From assembly GCA_907165135.1 (NCBI GenBank), contig OU015566.1, forward strand, positions 3,224,001-3,288,000: a stretch of 64,000 nt of DNA, written 5' to 3'. Source of the DNA: Oikopleura dioica. Lineage: Eukaryota > Animalia > Chordata. The notes under the pieces were generated by a model. The model saw only the letters and a program-made list of their open reading frames with translations, was not told the DNA's origin and did not search any database. How positions within the stretch are numbered: position 1 is the first letter of the stretch; each line of letters opens with the position of its first letter. Made by a program: the position numbers and the translations under genes. Positions 36,591 through 58,906 of this stretch are shown one piece after another.

Positions 36591-37045
36591 TATTCTCGTT
36601 TTTTCTTATTTCTCTATTTTTTCTGAAAAAATGGATTTTAATTTTTTTCCTTAGAGAGAAAATTGAGGCCAATAAGAGCGCGCCGCGCGCTATTTGAATA
36701 TCTGAGGAAGCAAATCTAGAGAAACCGCTTGAAATTGGTCAATTCGGGGAGCTCTAGTTAGCAAGTTTTTCTAAAAGTATTTTTTTTTGTTAGAAATTCT
36801 ATATTTTTATTTTGAAAAATGGCAAATCATCTAAAACAGAAAGTATCAACAACGCAACGGAAAACGAATATCAAGTATCAACAAAGTGGTTAAACTTGCA
36901 CGACATATCATTAGAGCTCTCTATTGCAAGAGTGCTGAATTTCGCTCATGAACTCATCTAGTGGCGAGGGCGACTTCCGAAGTCGTCAAATTCAAAAACG
37001 AATGTGTTTCTCAATTTTTTCAGAGAGAACTATTTTCATTTAACA

Positions 37046-37680: not shown

Positions 37681-38165
37681 GGTGGGTCACTTTTCTAACA
37701 ATTTTTCTGTACGCTTTGTTTTTTGAGCTTATCTGATAGAGCTCGTTGCGCTGATCATTTTGAGCCCTCAAATACCTCCATACCCTTCCGGGAAAATACT
37801 TTTGCAGAATCTGGGAAATCATGAAAATTGAAAAATTTTGGTCAAATTAGAGTCAATTCCGGTATAGTCAGAGCTTTAAAATGTGTATAAGATAAGTTCC
37901 TGTAGTTTCCCGGAGTAGATTCGGGTATCGAATTGACGAGCTTGACGAGTTCTATCTGATGACGTCATAATATCACGTGATATGGGGGTGTGCCCAAAAG
38001 TTATTCTAGAAAAACCATTTTTTCGAACATGAATTTTTCAAAAAAGAACCCCAAAAAAATTTTTTTTCCGAATCTATTGAAAAAAGTTCTTTATTCGGGT
38101 CAGATCTATCACCTGATAAAATTAAATCAAGTTCGGAAGACCAATCATGAAAGTGACCCACTCTA
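37678..38165. mobile_element. 488-bp hAT-type MITE
   Basis: Ends TAGGGTGGGTCACTTT / AAAGTGACCCACTCTA; perfect 8-bp TSD GTCCTATC at 37670-37677 and 38166-38173; absent from the paralogous locus near 40260. Confidence 0.9.
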
Positions 38166-38290
38166 GTCCTATCTTTTCTGAATGCATCGAACCTACCACT
38201 AGCCCAAGTATACTTCTTGGAAAATAAACTCATTTTTTTTATTTTGTCGGCTTATTTTATGCTTTAAAGTTTATTCGTGTGTTTTCAATT

Positions 38291-38530
38291 TTACATAGAA
38301 ATCAGTCGAATCTGCTCAGAGCTCATTTGTTCAACTTTGTACTTTTTCGTGATATCGTCGTGTCTCGCACTCCAGGCGGCGCCGATCTTCGGCACTTGCT
38401 GGAAAAACTCAATTAGTCCGATGAAAACTGTGATCAAGCCAGTAATGAACATGATCCAAATCGCGATCGTCTTCTGATGCGGGCGGGAGATGTAGCAAGT
38501 GACGATGTTGCTGAATGGTTCACGATCTAT
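38291..38530 (-). pseudogene. Duplicated last exon of the connexin (fragment)
   Basis: NIVTCYISRPHQKTIAIWIMF...QIRLISM*, nearly identical to 40381-40620, but the E2 motif REPC is changed to REPF and no upstream connexin exons are present. Confidence 0.8.
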
Positions 38531-39006: not shown

Positions 39007-39603
39007 GGCACGCGATGCATGAAAATGATCGTCTTGTCGAGCTCTACATTGGCATCTAGGTCTCAACCCTTTTCATCCATTTATTCTCGAAATCAATATT
39101 TTCAGAAAACAGCTGATTTCAAAAAGGCTGAAAAAATAAATTTCAAGGGTTCATACCATGATGCCGATGTAAAGTTCGACAAGACGATTATCTTCATGTA
39201 TCGCTCAGAAATCTTTATTGAAAATCGTCTTAGGAATCGAGTCCATTCGGGGAACTAAGAAGAAAATAAGAAGGTTTTTTAACTTATTTTTACAAACATA
39301 AGAGTAGGCTGTTTTCAAAAACAATAAGATGAGTTTTTTAGAGAGCTATTTAACTTCGAATTGACAAATATCTTCTACGTTCAAAAATGGCAAATCATCA
39401 AAAACAGAAAATATCAACGCAACGGCAAAAAAATATCAAGTATGAACAAAGTGGTTAAACTTGCATGACATACCATTAGAGCTCTCTATTACAAGAGTGC
39501 TGAATTTCGCTCATGAACTCATCTAGTGGAAAGGGCGACTTCGTCAAATTGAAAAACGAATGTGTTTCTCGATTTTTTCAGAGAGAACGATTTTCATTTC
39601 AAA

Positions 39604-40329
39604 ATGAAGATGAAGGTATTTCAAGAGATTTTCTTTTCAGAATAATTTTATTTTATTTAGATATTCTTTTTGCTTTTCTCTTCGATTGTGAGTAAATCGC
39701 TGAGCATTTCATCAGCTACCGCATGGAAAGAAATCGTTGAAGCCTACGAGACTGTTCTCGAAAAAGTCTCTCAAAGCGAAAATGATTGCCTTGCCGTAAC
39801 ACCGAAGAAAATACGAGGCTTCTTTGAAAGAGTCGAGAATTTTGGTGCAAGAGTGAAAGATAACTGCGCTGAATTTGCTGGATCCGGCGACGAGAATGAC
39901 TTCATCCGTCCATCAGTCGACAATCCTAACAGGATAGAAATGATGCACAATTTTTACGAATCGATTAAGAGTTTTCACAACGCTTTCGTTTGCATGGACG
40001 GTAATACGAACAAAAAATGGCGATCAAAAAACATGGTTCACTACATCAATCGACAAATAAGATGGACAGAAAAAAGAGGGTGCGATACAGAGAAAGAAAA
40101 AACGCGTGGGAAACAGCAAAAAGAAAAAGCGCCTGTCAAACAGCAAAAAATCGTGATTGGACCAACCGGTCTGCAATCTTTATGTTTCTCTAAAAATTTG
40201 ATTGAACTTTTTTGCAAACCAGAAACTGTCCAGAAATTCCCTCATCACAAAGAGAGTTGTCCTAACTATTCTGAATGCATCGAACGCCCTATCAGTAGCC
40301 CTAAGTTCCCTGCTCTCTGTGGAAAATAA
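39604..40329 (+). CDS. Secreted orphan protein, paralog 2 (full length)
   Basis: MKMK-IFFLLFSSIVSKSLS signal peptide; conserved Cys pattern; ends ...KFPALCGK*. Confidence 0.8.
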
Positions 40330-40380
40330 ATTCAATTTTTTTTTTGTCAACATGTGAGTTTTATTCGTCCATTATCAATT

Positions 40381-40808
40381 TTACATAGAAGTCAGTCGAA
40401 TCTGCTCAGAGCTCATTTGTTCAACTTTGTACTTTTTCGTGATATCGTCGTGTCTCGCACTCCAGGCGGCGCCGATCTTCGGCACTTGTTGAATAAACTC
40501 AATGAGTCCGATGAAAACCGTGATCAAGCCAGTAATGAACATGATCCAAATCGCGATCGTCTTCTGATGCGGGCGGGAGATGTAGCAAGTGACGATGTTG
40601 TTGCATGGTTCGCGGTCGCATTGGTAAGTCTAGAAAACGGTTTGTCTGGTAGACAGGGGGACAGGGGCTTACCTCTGGCATGTAAAGAGTCCAGGCGTAG
40701 ATTTGAAAGTAATACCAGATGAAGATCGCTTCGATAATTGTTCGGAAAAACACCTGAAGGTTTTGTCAGCTCAAAAATCGCGAGAATCTCTTCTTTCGTG
40801 GTCTTACC
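40381..40808 (-). CDS. Connexin 3' exons (TM3, E2, TM4), separated from the 5' exons by the 17-kb transposon
   Basis: VFFRTIIEAIFIWYYF...TYQCDREPCNNIVTCYISRPHQKTIAIWIMFITGL. Removing the element gives ...LAYVTM|gtaaga-54 nt-ttcag|VFFRT in frame. Confidence 0.92.
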
Positions 40809-40811
40809 ATT

Positions 40812-41091
40812 GGGACGTGAAAATATAAATTTTCGGTTTTGACAAAATGTCGTAAACGTAACATTTTCAAAAATCTAAAAGTGCAGTTATGTCGAGCTAG
40901 ATGTGCCATTCATGAATCTGCAAAAAATTTTGGGATTTCATTATTATGAAGCGTGGGCGGGGCGATCTAAGAAAAAATTACGAACTCGCCTAGGGACCAG
41001 GGGTACTTATTTTTTCGGTTTTTTTTTGGGCTTTATTATTCTCTATGATCCAAGGACGCTTCATCTTTTTTCAGATCTAAAATTACTCATC
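40812..41091 (+). repeat. Left terminal inverted repeat
   Basis: Reverse complement of 57677-57956 with 4 substitutions and 1 homopolymer indel by manual comparison; contains a GC box (GGGCGGGGCG). Confidence 0.95.
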
Positions 41092-41615
41092 GTTATCATC
41101 AGTTATTGCCAAATTTCAAATTTGATAATAATTTCGAAAAATTCTTAATAAATGCAAAACGAAAGATTCTTTTTCTGAATTAAATTATCTATTTCTTTAA
41201 TAAAGCATAAAAATGATAAAAAAAAGTATTCTCGGAAAAGATAAACCTTTTAAAAATCGATTTTTATTCATTTAAAATATATAAATACAGTAAATATTCT
41301 GATATCTGCAAGATCACTAGTCTATCACCTGAAATTTGTAAAATCACTCGGATTAATGTTAATGATTATCCACTGATTATCCTTATCAGTGGTTCCCGCT
41401 CTCGGCGAGCGAGAGCGGCATGTTGCGCCCTCTTTTGGCCGCAGAAAAGTGGCATAAAAATCGCTTCCGCTTCCGGAAAAAACAAGTTCAAAGGCAAAAA
41501 TTTTAAAACACCAGGGGTTCAATTATTGACATTAGCTAGTTTTTCATAAATTTTGATTTTATTTTTCTGAAATTTGTGAAACATGGAAAATATCAATAAA
41601 TGAACCCCTGGTTAA

Positions 41616-41950
41616 ATGAGAAAATTTGAAGAGATGAAGGAAAAAATCATGTTCCTGTTGGTTTTGGTCGTCGTTTTGGTCATTATCATCAAGTTTTCAG
41701 GTAAAATTAATGATGAACTATTTATTATAAAATCTAGTTGTATAATTTTATCAATTAACTCCATAAATCCTTATTTTTGTATAAAATTCTCTATTTAGTT
41801 CAAGATGAAGAGGAGTCCGTCGTGACAACTACTTCAACAACAACTTCTTCAACAACCACAGCAACTGAATCAACAACGACGAGGTTCTTCTGTGGAATGC
41901 GTTACCATCGCCGTTTTCATTATCGACTGCGTGATAAAATCTGTCCTTGA
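41616..41950 (+). CDS. Cargo: 78-aa single-TM protein with a Thr/Ser stalk and a basic two-Cys tail
   Basis: Exons 41616-41700 and 41799-41950 (GT-AG, phase 1) give MRKFEEMKEKIMFLLVLVVVLVIIIKFSVQDEEESVVTTTSTTTSSTTTATESTTTRFFCGMRYHRRFHYRLRDKICP*; AATAAA overlaps the stop. Confidence 0.7.
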
Positions 41951-41977
41951 ATAAAAATAACCGAATTTTAATTTTAA

Positions 41978-42459
41978 CCGTATGCGGCTCGCGGGGGAAC
42001 TTTTTTCCCCCGCGCCCCTTTTTTGCCAATTTCTCGGCCATTTTTGGTCCAAATTCAAAAATTCAAAAAGAATAAGAATCAACATCGAATTTCCTATCTT
42101 CTTAGATCATAAAAATGATATGTTGGTATTTTTCATCAATGAGTAAATTGTAAAAAACCGTCAAAAATAGCCATTTTTTGTCTCGAGAACATGAAATCTG
42201 TCTAGAAAATCGAAGGAACGCGCGTAAAGTTGGTGCGTTTTCGTCTCCAGAACATGAAATTTGTTACATAACAGTCTCTAGCTCGCCTGAAAAACGCCAA
42301 AAATTGAAGATTATCTGTCTCCAAGACACTGATAACACGAGACTCACCCCATTTTGCTCCGAAGACGCGTAAAATAAGGCATAAATTCTTCTAGATGGGC
42401 GGGTGAAAAAAATTCCCCCGCGAGCCGCACAGGGGGTGCTCTGACCGAGACGCATACGG
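41978..42459. mobile_element. 482-bp TTAA-flanked (piggyBac-type) MITE nested in the giant element
   Basis: TTAA|CCGTATGCGGCTCGCGGGGGAA ... TTCCCCCGCGAGCCGCA[25-bp insert]TACGG|TTAA. Confidence 0.75.
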
Positions 42460-42583
42460 TTAAACGTAAGTGACTTGTTGATTAGCAGTTCGAACATTTC
42501 GGTAGGGATTTTCAAGAAAGAGAGATTCTTAGATGCAGCAAATTCGATTGAACCAGAAAGCGGGAAGGTTTTTTGGGGGAGAT

Positions 42584-42936
42584 GGGACAATTGTCCGGTC
42601 CAAGTCTTGAGGAGCGCGCTACGACACCGCGCTTCAGTAGTTACTAGCCGAACAGTAAGAGGCGCCAAGGAGCACCCGCCAGAATCAGAATCACGAGCCA
42701 GGAATAAAAATCTCTCCTCTATCTGATGCCATTAAGACTTTTGCTGATAAGAACTAATTCTAGCTAAATGTACTTTCTATTTTTGAGGTTAGGGTTAGGG
42801 GGCACTGAGCAAAATGACAGAACAAACTCATCCGAGGGGGATAGGCTAGGGTTAGTTAGGGTTAGGGTTAGGGCTAGTAGCTTACTGAAGCGGTGTGGTA
42901 GCGCGCTCCTCAAGACTTGGACGGGACAATTGTCCC
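42584..42936. mobile_element. ~350-bp inverted-repeat element with internal TTAGGG repeats, nested in the giant element
   Basis: ~65-bp arms starting GGGACAATTGTCC.GTCCAAGTCTTGAGGAGCGCGCTAC; TTAGGG units at about 42787-42800 and 42846-42873; no clear TSD. Confidence 0.7.
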
Positions 42937-44748
42937 TCCAGCCGTTTTTTGGGCAGATTGCAACGATTCGATCTGTCACCGCGTTTTTAAAGACTGACCC
43001 GTGTTATTACAGAGTGGAAATAACTGCCAAAGTTCGATCCAACCGCCATCGTCGAGGTCTACCTCCGAGTTGTTGGTGGCGAAGTCGGTGCCACTTCCGC
43101 CCTTGCCCCAAAGATCGGTCCCTTCGGTCTCTCCCCAAAGAAGATCGGTGCCGACATCTGGCGCCCGGGATCTTTCCGGCACCATCCGAGAAATCCTCGG
43201 CACTGCCCAGTCCGTTGGATGCACCGTCGACGGCTCCGACCTACACGATCTCATCGATAAGATCAACGCCGGCTAACTCGATTTTCCTCTTGAATAAATA
43301 CTGCAGCTTGAGTTGAGCAACAAAAAAAAACCATCTTTTGGAGAATCCTAGTTTTATTTACGATTATTCTCTTCCTTGTTTCTATGTGCTTATTTGCAGG
43401 GCTAGATGAGTTCTTTTAATGCGTATTTACAGGGCATTACAGTAACGGTTATTGCTTGTGCCGATAAATAGGCTCAGAAATGATGGCAAAATCGTAGCTA
43501 CGCCGACGGACGTGGCTTTTATCAGACTTCAGCAGCGGACTTCTTGGCAAAAGTCCCTTGGGAGATCTGATTCAGTATAATTTAATGAGCACAAATAATT
43601 AAACTCCGTCTGGGACCGTTCTTGTAAGATTCGCGCACTCTTCCTAAAAAACGACAAAAGCTAGATGCGAACAAGTCCAAAGTGCTCAAAATCATCACTA
43701 GAATTCGAAAGCGATTGGGGAGCCAATTACAGTCGATATTCCAGGTGTTGAGGCACCGATGGGAGAAAAGTACTGCGTTGAAATTGAGAAATTCGTGATT
43801 GGAGTGCGCCTCAGAAAAATCATACGGAAACGCCCTTTTTTCTAAGAACCATGCAAAAGTTTTTATCGTAAAATCCGACGCAAAAGATCTTCCAACGATT
43901 CTCAACTATTTTCATTCCGCTGGCTTGAAATACACGATCTGCAAACTTGCTGCAGCATTTCCCGTCCGTTTTTGTACTCGCTTGATTCAAAATTACAGTA
44001 AGACTACAATCCATACAGTCAATTTTCATGCCCGTACTGGACAAATTGCCCTTCCGGGATCGTTTCTGAGCAAGGATTGAGACAGTCGCACCTGTTTTCT
44101 CGGTTTGACTTGGCTGTTCTTGACGGGTCAATAATGAACTTGGCAAACCGCTGACGATTTTGGCGACGCATGTGGCTTGATCTTGAACGCTGCATTTGCT
44201 TTCTCTATCGAGTCATTTTCGCCGCGCAGGTAATTCATCGTGCAATTGCAAGTGTTCTCGACCGTGTCTGCCAGAAAAAACTGCCAGAAAAAATAATGCC
44301 GCATTTTTGGAGGGTTCTTTTTCTCTTCAGCGAATTTTGGCTGGTATCTCCAGGGCAGAGCCTCGAACAACTGGTACATGATTGAGTTTTCCGCTCGCTG
44401 CATCAACAGCCTTTATTATTTGATCGTCGAGAATTGGTGCACGTTCTCGCGAGCTGTTGGAGCAATTCGATAGCTTGCGATCTTGTAGTTCAGTACGACC
44501 ATTCTTTGAACCAAACTCGAAATTATAAACGATCCGGTGGAACTGGAAGAAATGCTCAAGAATCATTTTTCGAGTTTCGGAGAAATAGTGGATTGTGCGG
44601 TGCTCAACGACCCTACTGCTGATTTTTCTAGCCGCGACTGTGATCAAAATGATTGCATCGCTGATGCAGTTCAAAAGAACGCATTTTGTCAGCTGTTTTT
44701 CTGGGTATATATTTTAATTTCTTGGTACTTCGAACACCAAAATTCGAG

Positions 44749-45920
44749 ATGAAAATTCCAGAGCAAAAAGCGAGAGCGATGCGAGAGAGAGAAAGAGAGC
44801 TTCGAGAAAGATATGGTGTAAGAAAAACAAGAGATTTACCACTGAAACTTTTGGCGAGACTAGATAATTTTAAGATAGATGAAAAGTACTTTTCTATCCA
44901 CTACATGTCAAGTAATTTTCCTAATTTCATACATCATGTCAACAAAACTAAATGTCAGCCTAAGTTTAAGAAAAATCTCATCAAAACAGCCGAAAAAATT
45001 TGTCTTACCCATCTTTCTGAACTGAATAAGGCAGACTCTCTCTATCTCCAGCCTATTTTGCTGCCTGAATTTCGCTTGAAAAAAAATTCGGCTTTGAAGC
45101 GTCCGGCAAATATAAAAAAAATCCATGAAATGGATAGTGAAGACCGTGCAGCTTTGGTTGGAAAGAACTCGAATGACATTGTCGCGGAGATTTCGCCAAT
45201 GTTCATCACCAAAGATCATCTGAGTAGCTTAAGCGGAACACAATGGGTGGACGGAGAGGTATGAAAAATAGTCAAATTTTCTTCACTGAACTCATTTTTA
45301 TTTAGGTCATCAACTTGTACATCAAGTTGATCGAGCAGCGATCTCTCCAAAATCCGGGCATGCTTCGAGTACATGCATTCAATAGTTATTTGTATGAGAA
45401 GCTTCAAGAAGCAGGCCACGCTTCAGTCAAACGATGGACGCGGAAATGCAACATTTTCAAGACAGACATCATCTTGTTCCCGATCCACGTTGGCGGGACT
45501 CATTGGACGCTGGCCTTTGCTGACACGAAGAAAAAGGTGCTCCGCTATTGCGATTCAATGGGTGGAGATAACCCGAAATGCTTGTCGATTCTTCTTGAGT
45601 ACTTGAAGGTAATTTTGATTGATCTCAAATGTTTCAAATTGATAATTTTAGACCGAGCACGAGGTGAAGCAAAACTGTCCACTGAGCGATGACTGGAAGT
45701 CCGAATCGATTTCAGAAGAAGTCCCCCGGCAAACGAATTCTTACGGTAATACAGTTTTTAAAAATCACCAATTTAATATCTTTCAGATTGTGCTATATTT
45801 TGCATGACTATTGCCGAATATATTTCCCGCGATGCGGCTTTCGATTTTTGCGAAGATGACATGCCCAATTTGAGAAAGTTGATAGGGTCTCAACTTCTCA
45901 GAAAAAAACTTATGTACTGA
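44749..45920 (+). CDS. Cargo: SENP1/2-like SUMO protease (Ulp1, peptidase C48), apparently intact
   Basis: QWVDGE-VINLY, VHAFNSYLY, VKRWTRK, FPIHVGGTHW (His), RYCDSMG (Asp) and RQTNSY-DCAIF (Gln/Cys); three GT-AG introns keep the frame. Confidence 0.92.
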
Positions 45921-46079
45921 TATAATCTCCATCATATTTTACGATGTTTTTTTAATTCACTCCTCCAATCTTCATTTTATTATTTTTACTCTCTTAGTTT
46001 TACTTCCAGTTTATCATGAAATAAACAGTCATTTTACTTGACATCAGTCTCTTTAATTAATCAGGGAGAGGCAAAAAGC

Positions 46080-47230
46080 TATGGTGTTCAAGAGCATCAT
46101 TGTGCACCAAAAGGAGTCGATGCGAAAATTGAAGAGGGAAATGTGCTCCACCGAGCAAAAACATCACCAAGTAAGAGTCCGTTTTATTTCTTGAAAGAAA
46201 AAAAGTTGCTCATACGAGTTTTTAGCTGATGGAAGAGTTCGGAAAAGAAAAACATCAAGAATACATGGACAAATCCGACGAGTTTGAAAATCTTTTAGGT
46301 AAAATAGAAAATGAGCTTTTTTCGGGACAAAAATTATTGTCCGAGGCCTGCCGGCAAAAAAATGAAGCTTCTTCTGGAAGAAGAAAAAACTCTACGGCAG
46401 GATTTCGAGGAACTACGAGAAATTGACAAAAGACTCTTCGGAAGAGATCGAAATGCTCAAGAAGTTCTCCATGTTGTTAGTCGAGGAAAAACAAGCGCAA
46501 AACAAGAAGGATGAGCGGTTCCTTTCCCGGCTGAAGACGGCAGAGTCAGAAATCGTCGAGCTTAAAGAGACACTCGAAACTTTGCTCAAATAGTTGGAAA
46601 ATGAGCAGGAGCATTCCGCCCAGGTAGAGCGTGGATAAGACGTGCTCTGCGACAAGCACATACAAGAATTGGAAGATGCGATGGAGGAACTCGTGGCGGA
46701 CAGGAAAAAAGTCGCTGAGTTGGAAGACACGCTCGAGAGCAAAATCGCACAGGTGAAGAAACTTAAGGGGTCCCCATTGGTTTTGCGAAATCACGTATTT
46801 TTGAACAGCGCTGACCAATAGATGCTCTTGTACTTTTGAATTTTTAACACTTCTAAATTGTAGATCTATCCTTCAGCTTAAAATATAATTTTCGAAAAAA
46901 AAAATTATCAAGCATTTTAGGCGCTAGAGAGCTCGAAAGAGGACTTACTCGAGAAGAATAACGATTTTGGCTCATTTTCAAACACGCCTCAAGCCCAAAA
47001 AAAACAGATTTTTTTCAAACTAGCTTTGTTTTTAGAAACTACCAATCTTGATCTAAAAATTAAATGAAGGGTAGCTGGATTCCCCAAAAAATGTTTATGT
47101 AATATCGAGACAGGTCGCCAACGAGCTCAAAGCGATGGAAGATCTTGAAAATGAACTCGATCGATTGCGAAAAACGGCCTTGATCAACAAGCAACCAGAG
47201 TTCGAAATTCCCGCGAACTTTTGCGGGTGC
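46080..47230 (+). CDS. Cargo: multi-exon coiled-coil protein
   Basis: A series of short E/K/L-rich ORFs (46229, 46311, 47135) separated by intron-like AT-rich segments; exact model unresolved. Confidence 0.5.
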
Positions 47231-47260
47231 GGGGGGGAGCGGGAGCAAGGTCGAAAAATT

Positions 47261-48730
47261 AAAAATCACGAAACGGGGCTGAAACGGCCCGAAGGGCCGT
47301 CAAGCCCCTTAAATTTGAAAATCATGGAACGGGGCTGAAACGGCCCGAAGGGCCGTCAAGCCCCTTAAATTTAAAAATCATGGAACGGGGCTGAAACGGC
47401 CCGAAGGGCCGTCAAGCCCCTTAAATTTAAAAATCACGGAACGGGGCTGAAACGGCCCGAAGGGCCGTCAAGCCCCTTAAATTTAAAAATCACGGAACGG
47501 GGCTGAAACGGCCCGAAGGGCCGTCAAGCCCCTTAAATTTAAAAATCACGGAACGGGGCTGAAACGGCCCGAAGGGCCGTCAAGCCCCTTAAATTTAAAA
47601 ATCACGGAACGGGTTGAAACGGCCCGAAGGGCCGTCAAGCCCCTTAAATTTGAAAATCACGGAACGGGGCTGAAACGGCCCGTAGGGCCGTCAAGCCCCT
47701 TAAATTTAAAAATCACGGAACGGGGCTGTAACGGCCCGAAGGGCCGTCAAGCCCCTTAAATTTGAAAATCACGGAACGGGGCTGAAACGGCCCGAAGGGC
47801 CGTCAAGCCCCTTAAATTTAAAAATCACGGAACGGGGCTGAAACGGCCCGAAGGGCTGTCAAGCCCTTAAATTTAAAAATCACGGAACGGGGCTGAAACG
47901 GCCCGAAGGGCCGTCAAGCCCCTTAAATTTGAAAATCACGGAACGGGGCTGAAACGGCCCGAAGGGCCGTCAAGCCCTTAAATTTAAAAATCACGGAACG
48001 GGGCTGAAACGGCCCGAAGGGCCGTCAGGCCCTAAATTTAAAATTTAAGGAACGGGGATGAAACAGCCCGAAGGGCCGTCAAGCCCCTTAAATTTGAAAA
48101 TCACGGAACGGGGCTGAAACGGCCCGAAGGGCCGTCAAGCCCTTAAATTTAAAAATCACGGAACGGGGCTGAAACGGCCCGAAGGGCCGTCAGGCCCCTA
48201 AATTTAAAATTTAAGGAACGGGGCTGAAACGGCCCGAAGGGCCGTCAAGCCCTTAAATTTGAAAATCACGGAACGGGGCTGAAACGGCCCGAAGGGCCGT
48301 CAAGCCCTTAAATTTAAAAATCACGGAACGGGGCTGAAACGGCCCGAAGGGCTGTCAAGCCCCTTAAATTTGAAAATCATGGAACGGGGCTGAAACGGCC
48401 CGAAGGGCCGTCAAGCCCTTAAATTTAAAAATCATGGAACGGGGCTGAAACGGCCCGAAGGGCCGTCAAGCCCCTTAAATTTAAAAATCACGGAACGGGG
48501 CTGAAACGGCCCGAAGGGCCGTCAAGCCCCTTAAATTTAAAAATCACGGAACGGGTTGAAACGGCCCGAAGGGCCGTCAAGCCCCTTAAATTTAAAAATC
48601 ACGGAACGGGGCTGAAACGGCCCGAAGGGCCGTCAAGCCCCTTAAATTTAAAAATCACGGAACGGGGCTGAAACGGCCCGAAGGCCCGTGAAGCCCCCTA
48701 AATTTAAAAATCAAAAAACGGGGCTGAAAC
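47261..48730. repeat. Tandem array of ~26 x 56-bp (some 55-bp) palindromic units
   Basis: Unit AAAAATCACGGAACGGGGCTGAAACGGCCCGAAGGGCCGTCAAGCCCCTTAAATTT; period checked (47461 to 47517). Confidence 0.97.
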
Positions 48731-48802
48731 TTTATAACATCCTTTTTATCCCTTACTTTATCATTACACAGGAGGAAACGAATTTAAAGATTTAATTCAA
48801 GT

Positions 48803-51800
48803 TTATTCAAAGAAAGCAGTTTTTTCATATTTTTGTGCAGTCCAGAATTTCAAATGAATTTCACGCAAAAAATTAATATCTTTGGAATTAAATTGATAAG
48901 GGGACTTTATAAAACTATAATTTTTAGTCGACAGAATTTCAGAATCCAGGATCATGTGTGGGCCGCAGTCATCCGCGTTTTGCGGCATCGTTTCCGGGAT
49001 TTCGACGTCAAAAAAATCTCCCCAAATATGACTGTTAACTTTCGTGAGAATCTCGCCAACTAAAAATAGACTTATTTATCCTTAAAAATATGACGACATA
49101 CCGTAACTCCAATAATCTTCTGGACTGTCAGCGTGATCATACAGGATTATCTTGTTCTCGTCTTTCAATAGACCAGCGACAACGAAATGACCCTTTTTTC
49201 TTCCGATACCAAGAAATGACTTATTTTTGATCGATTCTTCATTTAAGAAAAAAGTGAAGATAATGCGATTGACATTTTCCATTCCTCCACCATAAAAATG
49301 AAAAATTCTTGGCCAGAAGTTCCGAATATCATTTTCGTTTCTTCGAGAATGGCAGCAGTTTTATTTGGATCAACAAGTAAAACTTCTTGAGAAAATTCAT
49401 TCTTCATAAGATTGACGAGGTTGCAAAGAACATCCAAATAATAGGCTCTATTTGGTTTGAAAGAATTGCGACGATCCGCGATTTCTTTTTGTAGGTTTTG
49501 TCTTTACCTTCCGTCATTTCGCGAACAGCCCTCTTTATTTGTTTCATATCAATATCGATATTAGGCAAAGAAAGTTGAGGAGGATTTCGTGTTGCGCTCT
49601 CGTCTTCTTTTTCGGAAACAATAAGTGTTGGAAGCGGATGAACGACCGATTTAGGTATCTCCTCTTCTTCAAAGTTCTCGGTCTCTGTCTCACCATCAGC
49701 ATTGATCGACGATGAATTTACAAATTTACTCTGGCTGTGATTCTGGGAATGCGCTTGATTTTGGCTTTGGCTTCGATTTGTGTCTGGTTCGAATTGCTTC
49801 TCATAATCCATTCGACTTTGGCTTTGGCTTTGATTTTTGTCTGGATCGAAATGCTTTTCACAATCCATTTGACTTTGGCTTTGGCTTTGAGACTGGGTTT
49901 TATCCTTCTTATTTTTGTGTCGAATGTCCGCTTCACGAATTGAGCGTTCAACAACTTCTCGATATGTCATTGGACAATTTGAGAAATCACCGGCAGCACA
50001 AGAATCACAATTTGATGAACAGATGGCATTTGTGAATTGAATTTTCGATCGATCTTCTGAAAAACATGCCATTCGCACTCTTCGGCATTGAAAAGTCGAG
50101 GGGAACACTTCTCTCCGCTCTAGTTTATCGTAATTCTCCAGGTTTACAAATACACGTTCGAAGTATTTTTCGAATGGCCTTTCTGCTCGAATTCGATTCT
50201 CCTCAATTCGAAGTTTTTCAATCAGTTCAGGCAGATCAAGTCCTTCATCAAGACTGTTGTACTTGTCCGCTATCGAGGGCACAAAGCCATGATAGCCATC
50301 GATAAGACTCTTTTTTGGATGAACAATTTTTATCAATAACAAGAATTATGAAAAATGAAAAAAAAAGAAAGCCTACAATTAAAAATACTTTTTGCTCACC
50401 CAACCTTTCCATGGCTCGGGCATTTAAATCGAAGGCATGTCGGCCGAAGACTCTCCAATATGGAGAGACTAAACCTATTTTTGAACTCCCCCCCGGAGTT
50501 GTCACTGACTGCGAGGATTTTTCTTCCGGAGAGATCAAGATTACGCTTGGATGCATCTTCGAATGCGATGTCTTCAAGTATTTTTATACTGGAAATATCC
50601 TTCTCATAGGAAAGACCGTGGTAAACCATTCGAAACCATTGCTCTTCAATATCATCATACGCGGAAAAGATATAAGTCAGCGAAGCAACTGATTTGCTGT
50701 TCTAAAAAAAGTTAAAATCAAATTTTATTCTACTTTTACCAAAAATTGTCCTTGAGTTCTTCTTGAAGGTAAAATCGAGAAATTTTTGCCATAGTCAAAC
50801 TAAAATTTGTTCTTTTATCTTTACTTTAAAATTTTTACCAACCTCAACGTAAATTTGATTTCGATCAAGTTCGACTTCACCCGCTGAACACTTGATTCGC
50901 TTTTCGTGTGATAATTTTCTGTCGAAATGATGGGCGTGCATTTTCTGGAGGCTTTCAGAGCAAAATTGGAACGCCTCTTTGAATTTCATAAGAGCTGTTT
51001 CAGATCCTTGAGGCACCCAAATAATTTCTTTTGATTTAACCTAACATGAATTAATTAATTTTCAAATAAAGCGTCAAACTACCTTAAAATGAGGGATTCG
51101 ATAATTATGTTCCGATGATTTAACATCTTTTAAGAGATCGTTTAAAATATCGTCGATTGAGCTTGAATCGCATTTATGATTGCATCGGTTACAGGATTTT
51201 TCATTTTTCAAGTGTCGAAAGCATTCTATCACAAAAAATAAATAGAAGATCAAGAAAAATGACTTACGGAAATGTTTACGAATATCAGCGCAATGAAAAT
51301 TTTCATAAATATTGTCTCCACAGACACTTCTTTGGAAGAAATTCTCGACGGTTATCCAATTGTATTTTTTACGCTGATCTTCCGTCATATTTTCTCGGCG
51401 AATTTTATTGATGAAGTTGATGGATGACTGTCCATTCGTACAGTTTTCGCATTGGCATTGAAGACCCCAATAATTATCGCTACTTCTTATGACAACGTTT
51501 ATTGGGCGAAATTTATTCAAAAGATGCTCCGAAACATAAAATCCCAATCGTTCTCGAGCAAGTGCGTAAACTTCATGAGTTGTCGCGGATAAAATAAGTT
51601 TTTGCACTTTAACGATTTCTTCTGCGCCCTTTTTGAGATTCCTTGTTTCGTGAAAAGCGCCAATTTCATTAAATATCTGAAGCCAAAAATCATCGGTTTT
51701 TGATTTTCGTAGCGTCAAAGTAGACCGGTTCTTCGATACGATCGGGCAGGATTTTTCCAACCACGTTGTTGCTATCGTTTTTCTGTTGAGAACTCAGTAA

Positions 51801-52993
51801 TTCGCCTCGGCTCTTTCGAATAACTTGATTTTCTAAGATTTTTCGGCGATCTTCAATCGCCGTTAATGTTGCATGCTTGCTGACTTCAATTCTGTTCATT
51901 GACTGAATAATATATGGAAGTACTGAAGAGTCGGGTCGTGATGGAACGATTGAAGCGATAAATGAACGTTTTGCATCAGTTGATATCTCCGCGAATCGAG
52001 GGACAAAATCTTTGAGAAATTCAATTTTCACGAGTCCAAGTGAGTAAAACACAGATGTTATCGTCTTTTCATCAAGCTGTTTGATGATGGATTCGATGCG
52101 TTTTTTTGTATGTTTTATCAATTTATCCTCAGCTTGACATTGACGTGCAATTTTCCGATTGATAAACTGTTCTTCCTCCTCCAGTTCTTTTGAAAATTTT
52201 GCTTCTTCATATCGACGTTTTCTGTCATCTTTAGAATATTCTTTTTTTTTATCAGAAAGTTGAACATCTTTGTCGAAGATTTCCCAAAGTTCTTGAGAAT
52301 TTTTTTCGTCAGTTCGATCTTTGCGAAAATTCAGCGTGCATAAAGATGCGTGCGAGGGAAAAATTGACGCGGGAATAAACATAAGACAGCATCTGCACTG
52401 GATTCCATTGCAAGTACTTTTATGTTCAGTAAAAAATCTTGTTTTTGCGATCTTTTCCGAGCAAAAAATGCACTGAACACGCTTCAGATTTTGACTTGAG
52501 CGACCTATAAATATTCATTAGTTTTTATAAAAATTTGCTACTATCACCTCTCGGAAAGTCTTTTATTGGAACTTTGATTTCTTGAGGCGAGTGATGAGCC
52601 CTTCGATATTTACATTTACCATGAAGATGACTGTTATATTCGTCTGGAAGAAGAAAAATTTTGCCGCAAGAACGACATTCAGTTCCTAGAATCATTTCAT
52701 ACAATTATTGATAAATTTTTACGCCCTACCATTGCAGGTAGTTTCGTGTTCGGAATAATCAGTATTTTTGAAGAATTTAGCGCATTTACAACACTGCTTG
52801 AATTCGGGATAATCTTGAAATATCTTTATTTATAGAAAAAAATCGAAAATTAACCTTTTAAGTCACTTATTATAACCAGTGGTCCGACGATTGATCTTTT
52901 AACTGCATCTTTTCTGATAATTTGATTCAAAAGGGTGAGTGATATTAAAAATATCGAGACAACTGATCCGATGAATATTGTAAACCAGATCAT
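48803..52993 (-). CDS. Sola2-like DDD transposase with N-terminal zinc fingers and a fused C-terminal Ulp1/C48-like domain (~1150-1200 aa; start uncertain)
   Basis: Spliced motifs KVQKLILSATTHEVY, KFRPINV, CQCENC, HHFDRK, FDYGKNF (D, 50794-50796), VSDNSGGEFKN (D, 50501-50503), SHGK-SLIDG (D, 50298-50300) and CSSNCDSC. These parallel Sola2 QKRLIL..L.E.Y / LRP / DFSENY / SDG..QYKN / HGKG..DG, recalled from memory. Confidence 0.78.
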
Positions 52994-53373
52994 TCTAAGA
53001 ATAAAAGTCAGAAGATATTTTCTAAAATTCAAATATATTTATCATACAGAAACTCAACAAATAGTATCATTGCAACAACAGAAACGTAAATATAATTCTT
53101 TTTTACAAATTTCAAGAGATAAGCAAGAAAAATAATCTGAAAAAGCCTCGGACTTATAAGCATTCGGTAGAGATGACGCTGGAGTTGGATTAAACTGCGT
53201 TCGTAGACGTTAAGATCGAGATGACTTAGAGGAGCTCCGTCGCTTTATATAAAATATTTTAATTCGAAATGCATCATTGTGATAAACATTACCTTTGAAA
53301 AATGATGAGCATAATGAGAAGCATTGGATCAATTTAATAATGAAAATCTGAATAAAAATACAATAATTTTTTA

Positions 53374-54205
53374 TTACAAACTTTTAATAACAAATTGTAG
53401 AACAAACATAATTGAGAGAACAATCATAACAATGACAAGAAATATTTTGATATCACTAATTAGAATTCTAAAAAATGATTTTGCAGAAGAAAAAACATTT
53501 TCTGAGCGATTGGACAAAAAGTTATCAATGTGGGTATAAGTTAATTCAGTTAAATTAAATCCGTTTGAAAGCATGGTAAGAGCACTATGCGACCATGAGT
53601 ATGTTTCCGGGGTTAAAGATGAGAATTGATACATGTTATCAAGCTTCGCTGGCGTAAGAGTATATGAAACCATTCGCTTAGGAATAAGGAAGGTCTGCAT
53701 TTTTATCACTGCGTTATAGCTTCTTGAATATCTTGGTAGGCATATCATTCCCGCTTAAAAAAAATTTAGACGCTCACTTACTGAAATAGTTTTTACCTTG
53801 ACTTCGAACTTTCTCATTGGTTTTTATTTCAGCATATGTATCATGTCCACTTTCGATACAAATACGATCAGAATGATAATGAGCACGGCCGAAAGTGAAA
53901 GCAGACTGAGAGATACGAATATGCTGGTAAAGTCCGAATCCTTCTTTTGAATTTCTCATTTTACAAACATATGCTTCACCAATACCCCGCTCGCATCTTA
54001 ATAAATTCATTAATAATAAAAATCATTGATAAACAAACCTATCTCTTTTAAAAGATCGAAAATAATGTTGATTATCCCGATGCTCGCGCACAATTATTGC
54101 ATTGCTGAAATCGGGCGATTCGTAAGCATCAGCGTTAACGCGTCCGCGCGACTCGACTTTGACTGCATTGTATCGGGAAATTTTCGCAGGCATTTTTATC
54201 TCCAC
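53374..54205 (-). CDS. Cargo: orphan multi-exon gene with a C-terminal hydrophobic segment
   Basis: Co-oriented ORFs 54023-54205, 53774-54010 and 53374-53748, the last ending IKIFLVIVMIVLSIMFVLQFVI; junctions not resolved. Confidence 0.4.
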
Positions 54206-54389
54206 TGAGCAATATTTGTGAATAAAATTTAACCTGGCATTTTACTTGAGAGTTGAAGTCCAAGAAAAGTTTGATTGTCTTTATAAAGACTCAAGGAAGG
54301 CTCATCTATTTTGAACAAATAATTTGCAACTAAAAATATAAATAGAAATTTTAGACATAGAAATACCGATAAGCTCGCAGGAGTGGTCT

Positions 54390-55800
54390 ATTAAATGCTG
54401 CCTTTCAACTGTCGTGTTCTGATTCTGGCTCGCTCTACACAAAGATTTGAATAACCCTTGGGTATGGTAATCTAAAGATTGTTAATAAAGAAATATTTTG
54501 ATAATATACCGATATCCTCGCACGGCTGACTGTTTGTAAGCAGACATTTGACAAAATTCGACAGTGCCTCGAATCGATGCATGTTGTCATCAACTACTTG
54601 CTCCCACTCAACTGAGTCGGCTTTTGCTTGTATTTTTAAACTATCATCATTCTTGAATGGTGTTGATCGGAAGTCATCAATAGCAACAGCAAGTTTTTGT
54701 TGGTTCTTTTTTAGTTCCTGTAATGCAACATTCACTCTTTTCTCCAAGTCCTCGGTTTGTTTATGAGCTTAATTTTGAAGTTCAGATTTTCAATATTTTA
54801 AAATTTCAGAACCTCGGTAGGAGCCAAAATAGGGGAGTGAAAAACTAATTTCGTCCACTGCTGCAGTCAAATCGAACCCCCTCTTATGTTTATCTTGAAA
54901 ATCATCATTTTCAATACGCTCATCGGAAATAACATAATCAAGGATTGAGTTTGTCTTCATTGAAATTTTGAGAGAGTCAACGTAAGCGAGCGCCAATTTT
55001 AAATCCAGTAAATTTTCTTTTTGACAAAAAATGAACTCATTGTCCACCACACGGTCATTGAAAGTTTTTTTTCTCTCAGCTCGCTCATGTTTTTTGAACT
55101 GGAATCCAGGTGAAATGTACATCAACTCCTCTTTTTCAGCTGAAGATGTAGTCACGATGAAACTCGACAAAATGAGTCGTCGTATAAGAAAATCGTTTCG
55201 ATCAGCAAAATTTCGAAAAGTGAGGAATCGTTGGAATGCCTCAATCAATAGGTCACCGCATAGAGATTTTATGGGCTCACTCGTTTTTCGTGATCTTAAA
55301 AAGGGGCACTCAAGATTTTAGATGTCTTGAAAACAAATAAATATGATAAGAAATTATAAAATGCCTCTTTCCTGACGGACAATTGAAATAATTGATGCGC
55401 GTCGCATCCTCCCAAAATCTTTGTTACGATGGAATTTAAAAATTCTTCTTGCTGAGGGTTGGATAGCTTAATTTTCTCCACAATTTCGGCTTCAATATTC
55501 AAATTGAAAAAGGTCTCGATGGAGACAAACATATTTTTAGCAAGAAAATGCGCTTTTTTATGATGACAATCGTATTTACTGAGCTGTATTTAAACGAAAA
55601 GCCACCTTTCCTAAAAAGACGCCACAAGAAAGGTCAGATGATATCACTGCTTCTCCTGTGTCGGGAAACTGGACACTCATCGAAGAAGGTCCTGGGTATT
55701 TAAGGTTCAGCGTGAATTCGGCGAATTCTTCGCTACCGATAATGACATTTGCCGTATCGTGGATACTAGAAAGAAAGATTTTGAAGAATCTTCTACAGCT
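54390..55800 (-). CDS. Cargo: orphan multi-exon gene (partly duplicated at 1-980)
   Basis: Co-oriented ORFs 55576-55878, 55296-55532, 54790-55248 and 54472-54747 separated by intron-sized gaps; no family recognised. Confidence 0.5.
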
Positions 55801-56746
55801 GATTAATATTTTTATGTTAAAATCACTCAAATGGAAACCAATGTATATAAACCAAAGGACTGATTGTTCAATGATCAAATTAAAAAATTTAAATATATAA
55901 AACGATAAGCAGACATTGTTTATAATAAATTTAGATAGAAGCTTCTTAAACGGATTTTATCCATAATAAGACAAATAAACTTATTTTGATCATAAATATT
56001 TGCTTACGTCTTAAAATTCGCATTTACTTAATTCCAAAAGGATTTTTTCAATGCTTACTATTCGTCAAATAATTGGTTCGTAAAAAATATATTTAAAAAC
56101 AATAAGCATGCATTTTGAATCGTTAATTTGGAAAAAATTGTCTAAAACGGATTCTATCCATAATTAGACAGGAAAATTATCAATTATCACAAACAGCAGC
56201 TTTTGTTTTTAAATAAATTTTTATTTTTTCTTCAAATCTAACACGTCTTAAACGGATTTTAATCCATATTAAGACCAATATTTCTGTATTTATAGTCCTA
56301 CATTAATGAATAATAAATTCTATTCACAATGGGAGTTGAATTTAATTTTATACAATTATTTTACTTTTATCATTTAATCAGCGGTAAAAGTTCTTAAATA
56401 AAAAAATATCATATTTTAAAGTGTGTATCTTTCTCTTAGTTGAAGAGATTTCTGTTAATTTGACAAACAAAATTCGTTGGTTTTTGAGGTCGCAAGTATG
56501 ACGCTCGCCGAGGCCTTCATATGGCATATTTACCACGTATGGAACTGTATCGGACTACCCTCCTCTTTGACCCCTCGACCTTGAACCCGTCTGTCAAATG
56601 TTTTTATGAATGATTTCTGTTACTTATTCAGTCCAAGTGTATCATCGACTCTTTCATGCTGGGTCACGGATTTTAATCCATGAACACCAGAAGTAGTTTT
56701 CCGAATCAACTGTCTTGACTGATCCCCCAAATACGATTAAGAATAC

Positions 56747-56983
56747 TTACGAGGTTAGAAACGAATCCTCGACCTCAAAAGAATACTTTCGATTGTCAAC
56801 GAATTCTTGCTCCGCAGAGCGGCGTTGTCTTATTTCCGACGATGAATTCGTCGCAGACGCATCTGAGCCGAAAAAGACTTTCAGCCCTTCATAGATCTCT
56901 CTTTTGTTGTCCCGGAGTAAGTCCGCTATGAGAGTTGCGGACAAAACTGCGATGACTAGCTGAACAAAAATGGGAAATTGCAT
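56747..56983 (-). CDS. Cargo: small protein with an N-terminal hydrophobic segment (also at 1930-2166)
   Basis: MQFPIFVQLVIAVLSATLIADLL..., true ATG, a GTAAGT donor at the ORF end. Confidence 0.5.
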   Translation of the reverse strand: MQFPIFVQLVIAVLSATLIADLLRDNKREIYEGLKVFFGSDASATNSSSEIRQRRSAEQEFVDNRKYSFEVEDSFLTS

Positions 56984-57676
56984 GTTGATGATGATAAAAC
57001 CAACTCACGTCAAGTTATAAAGGCCAATGCCAACTGATAGAAACAACTGATCAAAACATAGCATGATACCGTAGACTTTCATTTTGACACTTATGGCGCT
57101 TCAGAAGAGGCGGCGCAGCAGGTCATCACAACCGCGCTTCTATTTTATCACACTTTGGAAATGACCGATGTGATCGAAGTTTATCCAAAATGGCAATAAC
57201 GAGCTAATTCTCAATTCTAAAAATTCTTGTCTTCAAGCATTCATTCTTCCATCAGGTTGGTCCTCCGGGAGGTCCTCCAGCAGAAAATGGCCAAAATAAG
57301 CCGAAAAAATGGCAATTACTAGCCCTTGATTATTGTTCAATGACTTTTTGAAATACTTCTCTTCCAGCACATAATCTTCCACCAGATTGGTCCTCCGGAA
57401 GATCCTCCAGCAGAGAGTGACCAAAATTAGCCGAAAATGGCAATTACTGGCCCTTCAAAGCTATTTAATTATCTTTTTAATTATTTGTTTTCCAGCAGTA
57501 ACTCTTCCACCAGGGTGGTCTTCCAGGAGGTCTTCCGGCAATTCTCGACCAAAAGTGACCTTAGGTGGCCATATACTGGCCAATCACAGCTATATATCCA
57601 ATATTTTTAGTATAATCCTCATAAACTATTACATAATGGGTAAAAATAATGAATAACGCAATATTTCATAATTGGG

Positions 57677-57956
57677 ATGAGTTATTTTTGATCTGAAAAA
57701 AGATGAAGCGTCCTTGGATCATAGAGAATAATAAAGCCCAAAAAAAAACCGAAAAAATAAGTACCCCTGGTCCCTAGGCGAGTTCGTAACTTTTTCTTAG
57801 ATCGCCCCGCCCACGCTTCATAATAATGAAATCCCAAAATTTTTTTGCAGATTCATGAATGGCACATCTAGCTCGACATAACTGCACTTTTAGATTTTTG
57901 AAAATGATACGTTTACGACATTTTGTCAAAACCGAAAATTTATATTTTCACGTCCC
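57677..57956 (-). repeat. Right terminal inverted repeat
   Basis: Reverse complement of 40812-41091; followed by ATT at 57957-57959. Confidence 0.95.
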
Positions 57957-58906
57957 ATTGTTACATAAGCAAGAAACAAAACGGAAGGAGTCGAATTTTC
58001 AGATTTGGTCGCTTTTGTCGCTCGATCATCATCTTTATTTTCCTTCTCGTCTTTTTTCGCTTTTTCTAGGGCGTTTTGTCGAGCCTCGCATTCTTGATTG
58101 ATTCTGAAAGAAGATAAAAAGGGAGGAAAAAGAAGGATGATCCTACCGATCTTCTTCTTCTTTGAGTTGTGCTTCAAGCTGTTTTCCATCGATTGTTACA
58201 CCACGGATTGTTTCGTAATCCTCAAAAGAACTTGAGCTTTTTTCGAATGAGTCGCCCTCTTGACGGTCCTTCCTGACTCAGGAAAAGTAAAACGCCAGAT
58301 TCAACAGGTCGCGACATGTTTAAATAGATGTGCAAATTCACAGTCACGGGCGCAGACTCTCAAATAAACTCTCCTACCTTTGAGTAGTCGATCTTTTCTA
58401 GGTCTTCTTTCAGCGCTCTCAGTTTTGCGGTGTATTCATTTTCGATCTTGGCCTTGTCTTTTTCAAGTTCTTCTAGCCGCAACTTTCGTGCAATCGCGAT
58501 TTTTTGCTTCTTGTCACTAGAAATGGCAGTATTTGCGATTGCCTCTTCTTTTGGCTTGTCACCTGACATAGACGACAAAAAGCATAATTGGGAGACAAAC
58601 GCAAAGCATTTGAATCGCCCAATATCCATTTGGCGTGATTGGGAAGAATTGATTGATGCACATTCTAGCGCAACCAGGCGTTTTTGTGTCGCATTCTAGA
58701 TCTGACCCTCCAAAGGCGCTACCGACGATGGAGAATAGAAGGAGAAGTCTTTATACAGGGTTTTTGATTGAAATTATGTTTCCTTGTATGAGTTATCAAA
58801 GCCCGTTCCTTAGTGCTAGAAAAGTCGAAATCCAGTATTTGCCCAATAAGGTTGTATGCTTCTGAGTCTCTTGCAGGTAATTCTCTATCACATGCCACCC
58901 TGCCAT
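57957..58906 (-). CDS. Connexin 5' exons (copy 2), continuing at 40808 beyond the transposon
   Basis: Same sequence as 3140-4089. Confidence 0.9.

Follow-up and report, generated by a model that had tools for sequence, protein, structure and literature searches.

The 64,000-nucleotide stretch of Oikopleura dioica DNA analysed here (contig OU015566.1 of assembly GCA_907165135.1, positions 3,224,001 to 3,288,000; hereafter the window) carries a 17,145-bp element at 40812-57956, which lies within a connexin gene. The element holds a multi-exon transposase gene with a fused protease-like domain, a separate SENP/Ulp1-type SUMO protease gene, a conserved orphan gene and an array of hairpin repeats. 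An inverted-repeat scan paired arms at 40805-41109 and 57658-57963 as a terminal inverted repeat (TIR) of about 300 bp, which BLAST trimmed to 40812-41109 against 57956-57658 (299 bp, 96% identity). A preliminary description of the same DNA had reported matched TIRs of 280 bp; the match was confirmed and the length corrected. The left TIR (40812-41109, plus strand) begins with the tip GGGACGTGAAAATATAAATTT, is 96% complementary to 57658-57956 and has its 21-bp tip kept in a related element from Okinawa. The right TIR (57658-57956, minus strand) was recovered by the inverted-repeat scan, by BLAST and by alignment of the ends. No match to the TIR was found in a phage database.

On the plus strand the element runs from GGGACGTG to CACGTCCC, that is, with GGG...CCC tips. 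The left end reads ...ACCATT/GGGACGTGAAAATATAAATTT and the right end, as its reverse complement, ...GTAACAAT/GGGACGTGAAAATATAAATTT, the slash marking the edge of the element. The flanks, ...ACCATT/GGG and CCC/ATTGTT on the plus strand, form a perfect direct repeat. This target duplication can be read as ATT (3 bp), CATT or ATTG (4 bp) or CATTG (5 bp), its length being ambiguous because the adjoining bases G and C are shared with the tips; the left copy is ATT at 40809-40811 or CATTG at 40808-40812, and the right copy ATT at 57957-57959 or CATTG at 57956-57960. The TIRs and the flanks place the ends exactly at 40812 and 57956, as first described, and the target duplication reported with them is present.

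The insertion site is the boundary between an exon and its splice donor in a minus-strand connexin gene of O. dioica, whose extracellular-loop cysteine motifs lie in the flanking open reading frames (ORFs) 58562-58750 and 40384-40629. Read on the minus strand, the upstream flank ends in ...GCT TAT GTA ACA ATG (connexin exon end ..AYVTM), and the downstream flank, after the repeat, starts with GTAAGACC... and reaches ...CTTCAG/GTG TTT TTC CGA 54 nt on. When 40812-57956 and one copy of the repeat are removed, the exon end ..AYVTM is rebuilt and followed by a GTAAGA donor, by an intron of 54 nt and then by the exon VFFRTIIEAIFIWYYF... (starting VFFRTIIEAIF). An intron of this size is usual for O. 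dioica, and GTAAGA is a consensus donor. The spacing of conserved residues in what we take to be the third transmembrane helix fits connexins only with VTM as host sequence. The preliminary description regarded the empty site as proven by the connexin frame. The frame is indeed rebuilt, and with the exon, donor and intron it makes the empty site a strong inference rather than a proof, no real empty allele having been seen.

In its present state, the connexin exon (minus strand, 57956-57960) is followed by GG instead of GT, and the original GTAAGA donor lies 17 kb downstream, at about 40806-40801 in plus numbering, just past the left end of the element. O. dioica uses some non-canonical splice donors. 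The connexin 3' exons also have a partial tandem paralogue at 36812-38527, 85-87% identical to 39380-40617, which contains an extra insert of about 490 bp and ends at an intron boundary near 40620. This paralogue was considered as a proxy for the empty site and rejected, as its homology ends about 190 bp before the insertion site.

A relative of the element was found in Okinawa O. dioica, from L006 6171 to L001 14370. It is 17,747 bp long with TIRs of about 400 bp at 80% identity, and its ends read ...CTAGCATT/GGGTGGTGTAAATATAAATTT and the mirror of this; the tip GGGnnGTGnAAATATAAATTT is common to both elements. It sits between unrelated host genes (bZIP, MRG, ceramidase) at a site that is non-syntenic with the window, and represents an insertion of a sister family that is old and independent of the one in the window. 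The two elements share at least 18 colinear blocks of protein sequence, which fall in the transposase and its C48-like domain, in the orphan gene and in the N-terminal part of SENP, and both have a 56-bp satellite. Since the Okinawa element has the same tip and target, with its genes in matching order at 28-55% amino-acid identity, most of the cargo is part of the element family rather than trapped host DNA. Conservation is confined to the coding blocks and does not extend to introns and spacers, which shows that selection has acted on the transposase with its C48-like domain, on the orphan gene and on the N-terminal region of SENP as parts of the element. Whether the cargo travels together was the check named in the preliminary description; most of it is colinear in this 17.7-kb relative with the same TIR tip.

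Within the window, positions 1-3139 match 54819-57956 at 99.97% identity (self-BLAST). The identity runs past the element through the flank to 9183, which corresponds to 64000, so that the two stretches form a direct duplication (99.95% identity, period 54,818 bp) in which both the element's right end and the connexin flank are copied. The copy at 1-3139 was ruled out as an independent transposition since the identity extends through the flank to 9183; as part of a 54.8-kb duplication that includes flanks, it gives no evidence of transposition. The 54.8-kb repeat could be a segmental duplication of recent origin or else an artefact of assembly or haplotypes, and as a segmental duplication it copied the element with its flanks after insertion.

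That the only second copy in the window belongs to this duplication, flanks included, and that an independent insertion was not found in this genome, would suit an explanation in which two copies of a miniature inverted-repeat transposable element (MITE), or an assembly artefact, bracket host genes. We give this explanation almost no credence: at the non-syntenic Okinawa locus the same genes, in unchanged order, lie between the same tips, excision of exactly 40812-57956 rebuilds the connexin exon and donor, and independent contigs of sample X3 hold the element interior. The Okinawa relative and the rebuilt connexin exon thus uphold the original view of a single cargo-laden TIR transposon. The X3 DNA contigs, which come from the same study as the likely source samples X1 and X2, match the interior at no less than 99% identity and differ from it by four small indels. 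These are 1-2-nt indels at 50925, 50947, 51777 and 54050, the first two 22 nt apart in a conserved transposase exon, and they could be sequencing errors or a decayed allele.

When the four ends of the two elements were aligned, the tip GGG..GTG.AAATATAAATTT was invariant and the flank pattern TAnCAwT was present at all four. The reconstructed targets, TAACAATGGTA for the window (minus strand) and TAGCA(T/A)TGCTA for Okinawa, are both versions of the 11-bp near-palindrome TAnCAWTGnTA (window 40808-40812/57956-57960; L006 6164-6175/L001 14366-14377). For two unrelated sites, a chance match at eight positions is expected about once in 65,000 cases. As the palindrome is centred on one base, symmetric staggered cuts would give a duplication of 3 bp (AWT) or 5 bp (CAWTG). 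These two insertions point to a strong target specificity and would favour a duplication of odd length (3 or 5 bp). Under each of the 3-, 4- and 5-bp readings, the duplication in the Okinawa copy contains one mismatch.

The transposase gene lies on the minus strand between 48803 and 52826. Eleven codon-aligned blocks (52826-48806) are colinear with Okinawa L001 5774-11464, nine of which (51658 to 48806) share 33-63% amino-acid identity with the Okinawa locus, and GT-AG introns of 31-95 nt join the blocks in frame at all junctions but one. With respect to autonomy, 10 junctions have an open frame, one junction shows an apparent frameshift, and no start codon could be located. We estimate a protein of roughly 1,100-1,300 residues, a figure taken from the 4-kb, 10-intron span and not from a spliced model. 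Its N-terminal region (51800-52793) contains four C-x2-C...H...C zinc-finger-like motifs (52793, 52677, 52472 and 52397), read from the translation, of which two are kept in Okinawa; such C2HC fingers would bind DNA.

Three catalytic motifs follow. D1 is DYGKNF (50779-50796; DYGRSF in Okinawa), at the same place as D1 of the published cores of the Sola superfamily. The catalytic exon (50402-50698) bears D2, SDNSGGEFKNRF, at 50506-50471 and PSHGK at 50419-50405. D3, LIDGYHG (50286-50306), comes after HGK across an intron of 92-95 nt and is kept in the Okinawa element and in L004. The catalytic part therefore reads ...IYVE(V)/(F)DYGKNFSILPSRRTQGQ (D1), ...ILAVSDNSGGEFKNRF...RFKCPSHGK (D2), the intron, and SLIDGYHGF (D3); in L002, a relative from the TARA metagenome, the D3 stretch is contiguous as HGKSAIDGLHG. 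The DDD motifs are common to the window element, its Okinawa relative and two contigs from TARA. An AlphaFold model of the D2 exon (pLDDT 59, low confidence) has strands and helices in the order beta-beta-alpha-beta(D)-alpha-beta, as expected for strands 2-5 of an RNase H-like fold. Downstream of D3 a cysteine cluster, FQCRRVRMA...C-x3-C-x2-C-x7-C, is the best-conserved part of the family. With its colinear conserved blocks, GT-AG introns and Sola-type DDD motifs, the gene bears out the spliced DDD transposase that had been proposed. The Okinawa transposase gene is interrupted by two inverted clusters of an approximately 14-bp repeat (GACTAGGTTCGTG-type) at L001 6044-6552 and 9160-9774, which look MITE-like; one of them splits the D2 motif.

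The 313-residue ORF 49407-50345, which includes D3 and the cysteine cluster, was searched with HMMER against 1.84 billion representative proteins and gave five hits. Four are relatives of the family, one from Okinawa O. dioica and three from ENA marine metagenome assemblies (two traced to TARA contigs), and the fifth, P0003, matches only within the low-complexity SQ-rich linker of the query. The best protein relative is from Oikopleura dioica OKI2018_I69. The SQSQ-rich linker, between the cysteine cluster and the C48-like domain, is encoded by a 57-bp tandem repeat of 2.4 copies at 49755-49890. Further on, the blocks of the transposase body and of the C48-like domain adjoin in different frames (apparent 1-nt frameshift, 49336-49345, minus strand), whereas Okinawa has a single frame. 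No canonical intron that resolves the shift was found at 49336-49345. The site lies in A-runs, so that an assembly indel is possible, and the shift is either real or such an indel.

For placement in a superfamily, single exons were compared with published Sola core fragments of at most 85 residues. The Sola1-1_AP, Sola2-1_HM and Sola3-1_HM cores were taken from Majorek et al. 2014 (PMC3985635, supplement) and the Sola2_DFa-2 protein from the supplement of PMC3627910. D1 (DYGKNF), D2 (SDNSGGEFKN) and HGK-x3-D are colinear with the Sola1, Sola2 and Sola3 cores at similar spacing. The published cores contain these three blocks too, likewise in this order, so the family fits the Sola pattern, in agreement with the earlier claim that the DDD transposase has Sola-type motifs. 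BLASTP of the D2 exon against the Sola1-1_AP fragment gave 23.9 bits and E 6e-5, with D2 SDNSGGEFKNRF matching Sola1 SDNCGGQNRNRF at 10 of 18 positions. In hhalign, a four-sequence profile of the exon reached a probability of 59% with Sola1 (E 9e-5), and its beta2 strand was in register with Sola1, weakly. Sola1 is the RNase H-like family E.10 of Majorek et al. 2014 (PMC3985635), and its core is apparently modelled by Pfam DUF7869, which the 66-residue Sola1 fragment matches at E 1.3e-4. The ESM Atlas language-model search assigned the D2 exon to clusters of DUF7869 at 0.95, with 201 of 256 features in common, and placed a separate upstream ORF in DUF7869 as well (0.80).

The preliminary description had assigned the element to Sola2. 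If the transposase were a very divergent member of Sola2, the 5'-GRG...CYC-3' tips and AT-rich 4-bp duplication typical of that group would agree with the termini, which are GGG...CCC in both the window and the Okinawa elements, although a 3-base tip is weak evidence, and with the CATT or ATTG reading of the duplication. The published dictyostelid Sola2 DFa elements have GAG...CTC ends, AT-rich 4-bp duplications and TIRs of 12-22 bp (PMC3627910). By eye, too, the HGKS-xx-D spacing resembles that of Sola2_DFa-2 (QYHGKSDVD) and D-x5-[FY]K[NS] matches the Sola2 cores; the likeness to Sola2 lies in these features seen by eye. Large cargo has precedent, as the dictyostelid DFa and PPa elements carry Fanzor1 and reach 10-15 kb with passenger genes, so that the earlier statement that Sola2 elements are usually a few kb was too strong (PMC3627910). 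By sequence comparison, however, BLASTP found no alignment of the D2 exon with the Sola2-1_HM, Sola2_DFa-2 or Sola3-1_HM cores, nor of the regions flanking it with Sola2_DFa-2. In hhalign, Sola2-1_HM had a probability of 0.5% (E 0.11), against 59% for Sola1, with the beta2 strand out of register. The Sola2-1_HM fragment matches nothing in Pfam, DUF7869 included, the model that the Sola1 fragment matches and Atlas assigns. The element also differs from the dictyostelid ones in having TIRs of about 300 bp instead of 12-22 bp and C48 proteases instead of Fanzor, with no detectable sequence similarity. The Sola2 assignment is not supported, and we consider such a placement unlikely.

The transposase could also belong to a separate, undescribed DDD superfamily with an odd-length duplication, TIRs of about 300 bp and a C48 fusion, its likeness to Sola around the second aspartate being distant or convergent. 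Its rarity (five hits, four of them true relatives, among the 1.84 billion representative proteins), the lack of a Pfam match for any transposase exon, the target symmetry that suggests 3 or 5 bp rather than 4, and the limitation of the statistical similarity with Sola1 to one motif would all accord with this. Yet the three catalytic blocks stand in Sola order at similar spacing, Atlas puts two separate regions in DUF7869, and the beta2 strand is, weakly, in register with Sola1; we judge a separate superfamily to be quite improbable. By the tests made, then, the transposase is best placed in the Sola superfamily, probably nearest to Sola1/DUF7869. None of the ORFs scanned matched the Pfam domains MULE, Transposase_mut, KDZ or Transposase_21/24. 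The four Pfam scans of ORFs gave no polymerase, capsid, reverse transcriptase or other transposase family, and the 35 ORFs of the window and the loci matched only C48, Ribosomal_L11_N and, weakly, RRM. A search for homologous proteins with three ORFs gave none, within length limits that exclude full-length transposases.

Taken as a whole, we consider it likely that 40812-57956 is a 17.1-kb cut-and-paste DNA transposon of the Sola superfamily, closest to Sola1/DUF7869, with a C48-carrying cargo, seen in O. dioica and marine plankton metagenomes only. It shares with Sola1 the DDD transposase with the same order of catalytic blocks, the TIRs and the Atlas assignment to DUF7869. It differs in being three times longer, in its TIRs of about 300 bp and in the possible 3- or 5-bp duplication in place of 4 bp. 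It also adds a C-terminal C48-like domain, a further SENP gene and other conserved cargo, has 'SHGK' where Sola1 has 'GHTQ', and its own exons fall below the DUF7869 model. Bao et al. reportedly found in 2009 a 4-bp duplication for Sola elements. The same length is given in PMC3627910, and Sola1 elements are among the longest cut-and-paste elements, with a mean of 5.4 kb in bivalves (PMC10294476).

Several observations weigh against this interpretation. The 4-bp duplication that is a hallmark of Sola is one of three readings here, and the target symmetry favours 3 or 5 bp. The significant Sola1 alignment spans 18-27 residues around D2 only, hmmscan of the element's own exons gave no DUF7869 match up to E 10, and the 728-aa product of the Okinawa locus is on record without a Pfam hit. 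One apparent frameshift precedes the C48-like domain, and the transposase start codon was not located. The Okinawa copy is without the SENP catalytic exons and is riddled with MITE-like inserts. Neither an independent transposed copy nor an empty allele was seen in this genome, and the three bulk RNA-seq runs X8-X10, labelled as the same species, gave 0-2 reads over 5.9 kb, although these runs, of unknown lineage, are no valid test of expression.

The element contains two units of the C48 (Ulp1/SENP) peptidase type. One is an independent gene of four exons on the plus strand (44749-45920; about 44749-45261, 45306-45608, 45652-45744 and 45789-45920), which matches Pfam Peptidase_C48 at E 1.3e-16 (61.5 bits, against a curated cut-off of 20.7). 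The residues H (GGTHWTL), D (CDSMGG) and Q..C (RQTNSYDCAIF) are all present and the frame is open to the stop, as expected for a C48 enzyme, and the gene is a predicted protease, in line with the independent SENP gene noticed at the outset. Its non-catalytic N-terminal part has a counterpart at the equivalent place and in the same orientation in Okinawa (28% identity over 117 aa).

The other unit is a C48-like domain fused to the transposase (48806-49434, minus strand), located by alignment and Pfam, with H in GHFVVAG (49192), D in LYDHAD (49144) and Q..C in PQNADDCGP (48979). The H and D are invariant across the window, Okinawa, the TARA relative and the element's own SENP gene. The last transposase exon matches Pfam C48 at the expected profile positions with E 0.0097 and 16.2 bits, under the cut-off of 20.7, and the homologous domain of the TARA relative passes it (2.4e-9, 37.8 bits). 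With this homologue, the invariant residues and the sub-threshold match, the second SUMO-protease domain of the preliminary description is supported. In the TARA contig, ORF L002:75-995 stays in one frame from the D3 motif through the C-terminus of the transposase and on into the beginning of the C48 region. Beyond a stop, and in a different frame, lies the Pfam-matching H/D segment (L002 1037-1273), presumably separated from it by a short intron. Because this ORF joins the transposase C-terminus to the C48 region, the fusion is probably ancestral.

Ulp1/C48 domains are also carried by plant KI-MULEs, CACTA elements and Zisupton. The likeness consists in a C48 domain encoded by, or fused to, a DNA transposase and in the capture of host fragments. 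MULE and Zisupton duplications are 8-10 bp long, and CACTA elements have 3-bp duplications and CACTA tips. The window element differs from MULE, KDZ and CACTA transposons in lacking a Pfam match to any of them, in its duplication of 3-5 bp rather than 8-10 bp, in its tips (GGGACGTG, not CACTA) and in having two C48 units. SUMO acts in silencing guided by PIWI-interacting RNAs (piRNAs) and in KAP1-type silencing. Transposon-borne SUMO-protease domains recur in unrelated superfamilies and, to our knowledge, their role has never been shown.

The remaining cargo is more varied. A conserved multi-exon orphan gene lies at 53380-55767 on the minus strand and ends in a hydrophobic C-terminal anchor, IFLVIVMIV (53445-53419). 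Seven of its blocks are colinear with Okinawa gene models of 357 aa and 130 aa at 22-43% identity, and short introns join most blocks; searches for it gave no Pfam family, homologue or ESM Atlas match. The membrane gene of the preliminary description is thus this orphan, its anchored product conserved in the Okinawa element. Size and this C-terminal membrane anchor might suggest a virus-like or Polinton/Teratorn-type integrated element, with the membrane protein as an envelope protein. This we find barely credible, because no viral domain was found in the scanned ORFs: neither a polymerase, capsid, packaging ATPase or integrase nor a viral Pfam family was present, and the membrane gene has no recognisable relatives. 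Starships use a tyrosine recombinase, Teratorn combines piggyBac with a herpesvirus, and Polintons have an rve integrase and a polymerase. All resemble the window element in exceeding 15 kb and in moving several conserved passenger genes as a unit, whereas the window element, which carries no viral genes, is a simple TIR element whose DDD transposase is of Sola type.

The hairpin array reported earlier at the centre of the element (47255-48730) comprises 26.6 copies of a 56-bp unit that forms a GC-rich hairpin with a GAA loop (Tandem Repeats Finder (TRF) score 2630); two units fold as DNA at -29 kcal/mol with a z-score of -4.8. A homologous array of 56-bp units also occurs in the Okinawa element, where its relative position differs, and the satellite may be an independent passenger. 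At 43024-43158 on the plus strand lies a fragment, the N-terminal exon, of the host uL11/RPL12 gene (Pfam Ribosomal_L11_N, 1.3e-8, 34 residues), whose similarity stops at KKIGADI, and a weak RRM-like exon is found at 44510-44749; from their sequences, these two pieces suggest captured host fragments. The coiled-coil gene of the preliminary description is at most putative, as 46226-47335 (plus strand) is a set of charged coiled-coil-like ORFs without a homologue, a Pfam family or conservation in Okinawa. Towards the ends, TRF and self-BLAST detected a subterminal tandem repeat of about 130 bp in 2.4 copies inside the right end (57221-57540). The left arm has two short inverted-repeat pairs (41978-42434 and 42584-42936) with arms of 36 nt and 47-67 nt spaced 350-450 bp apart, which may be nested MITEs; no further copies of them were found within the window.

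The element may be competent for transposition, and its organisation is best explained as that of a cut-and-paste transposon moved by a DDD enzyme of Sola type. The transposase would bind the 21-bp tips of the TIRs, probably via its N-terminal C2HC fingers, and cleave with an RNase H-like DDD site (DYGKNF / SDNSGGEFKN / HGK...IDG). Insertion into TAnCAWTGnTA would then duplicate the 3- or 5-bp centre. The family stably carries the fused C48-like domain, the free SENP gene, the orphan membrane-anchored gene and the hairpin satellite, and also picks up host fragments, here the piece of RPL12. By analogy with the Ulp1 domains that recur in MULE, CACTA and Zisupton elements, and with the part that SUMO plays in silencing, the most plausible role of the C48 units would be to remove SUMO from host chromatin-silencing or repair factors, or from the transposase itself. 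The anti-silencing (deSUMOylation) system of the preliminary description is likewise hypothetical. A more specific proposal, which we regard as doubtful and offer tentatively, is a distinct appendicularian Sola branch in which a two-enzyme deSUMOylation module strips SUMO from factors of piRNA or heterochromatin silencing, or of excision repair, and so lets a 17-kb element persist.

Large cargo-bearing Sola2 elements with Fanzor were already known. What is new is a lineage of the Sola superfamily, living in an ultra-compact chordate genome, that combines long TIRs and a palindromic target with a fusion of transposase and C48 and a conserved payload of several genes. Our full-text literature searches found no paper linking Oikopleura with Sola, or Sola with Ulp1/C48. 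The genome of Oikopleura dioica, 70 Mb in size, contains few transposons and its introns are tiny, and in so compact and transposon-poor a genome a 17-kb multi-gene transposon is unexpected. Its defined palindromic target, long TIRs with a conserved tip and large natural cargo capacity would be useful for work on the poorly studied Sola transposases. As a transposon with two C48 units in a compact animal that is bred in the laboratory and has several sequenced cryptic lineages, it could serve to test whether transposon SUMO proteases counter silencing.

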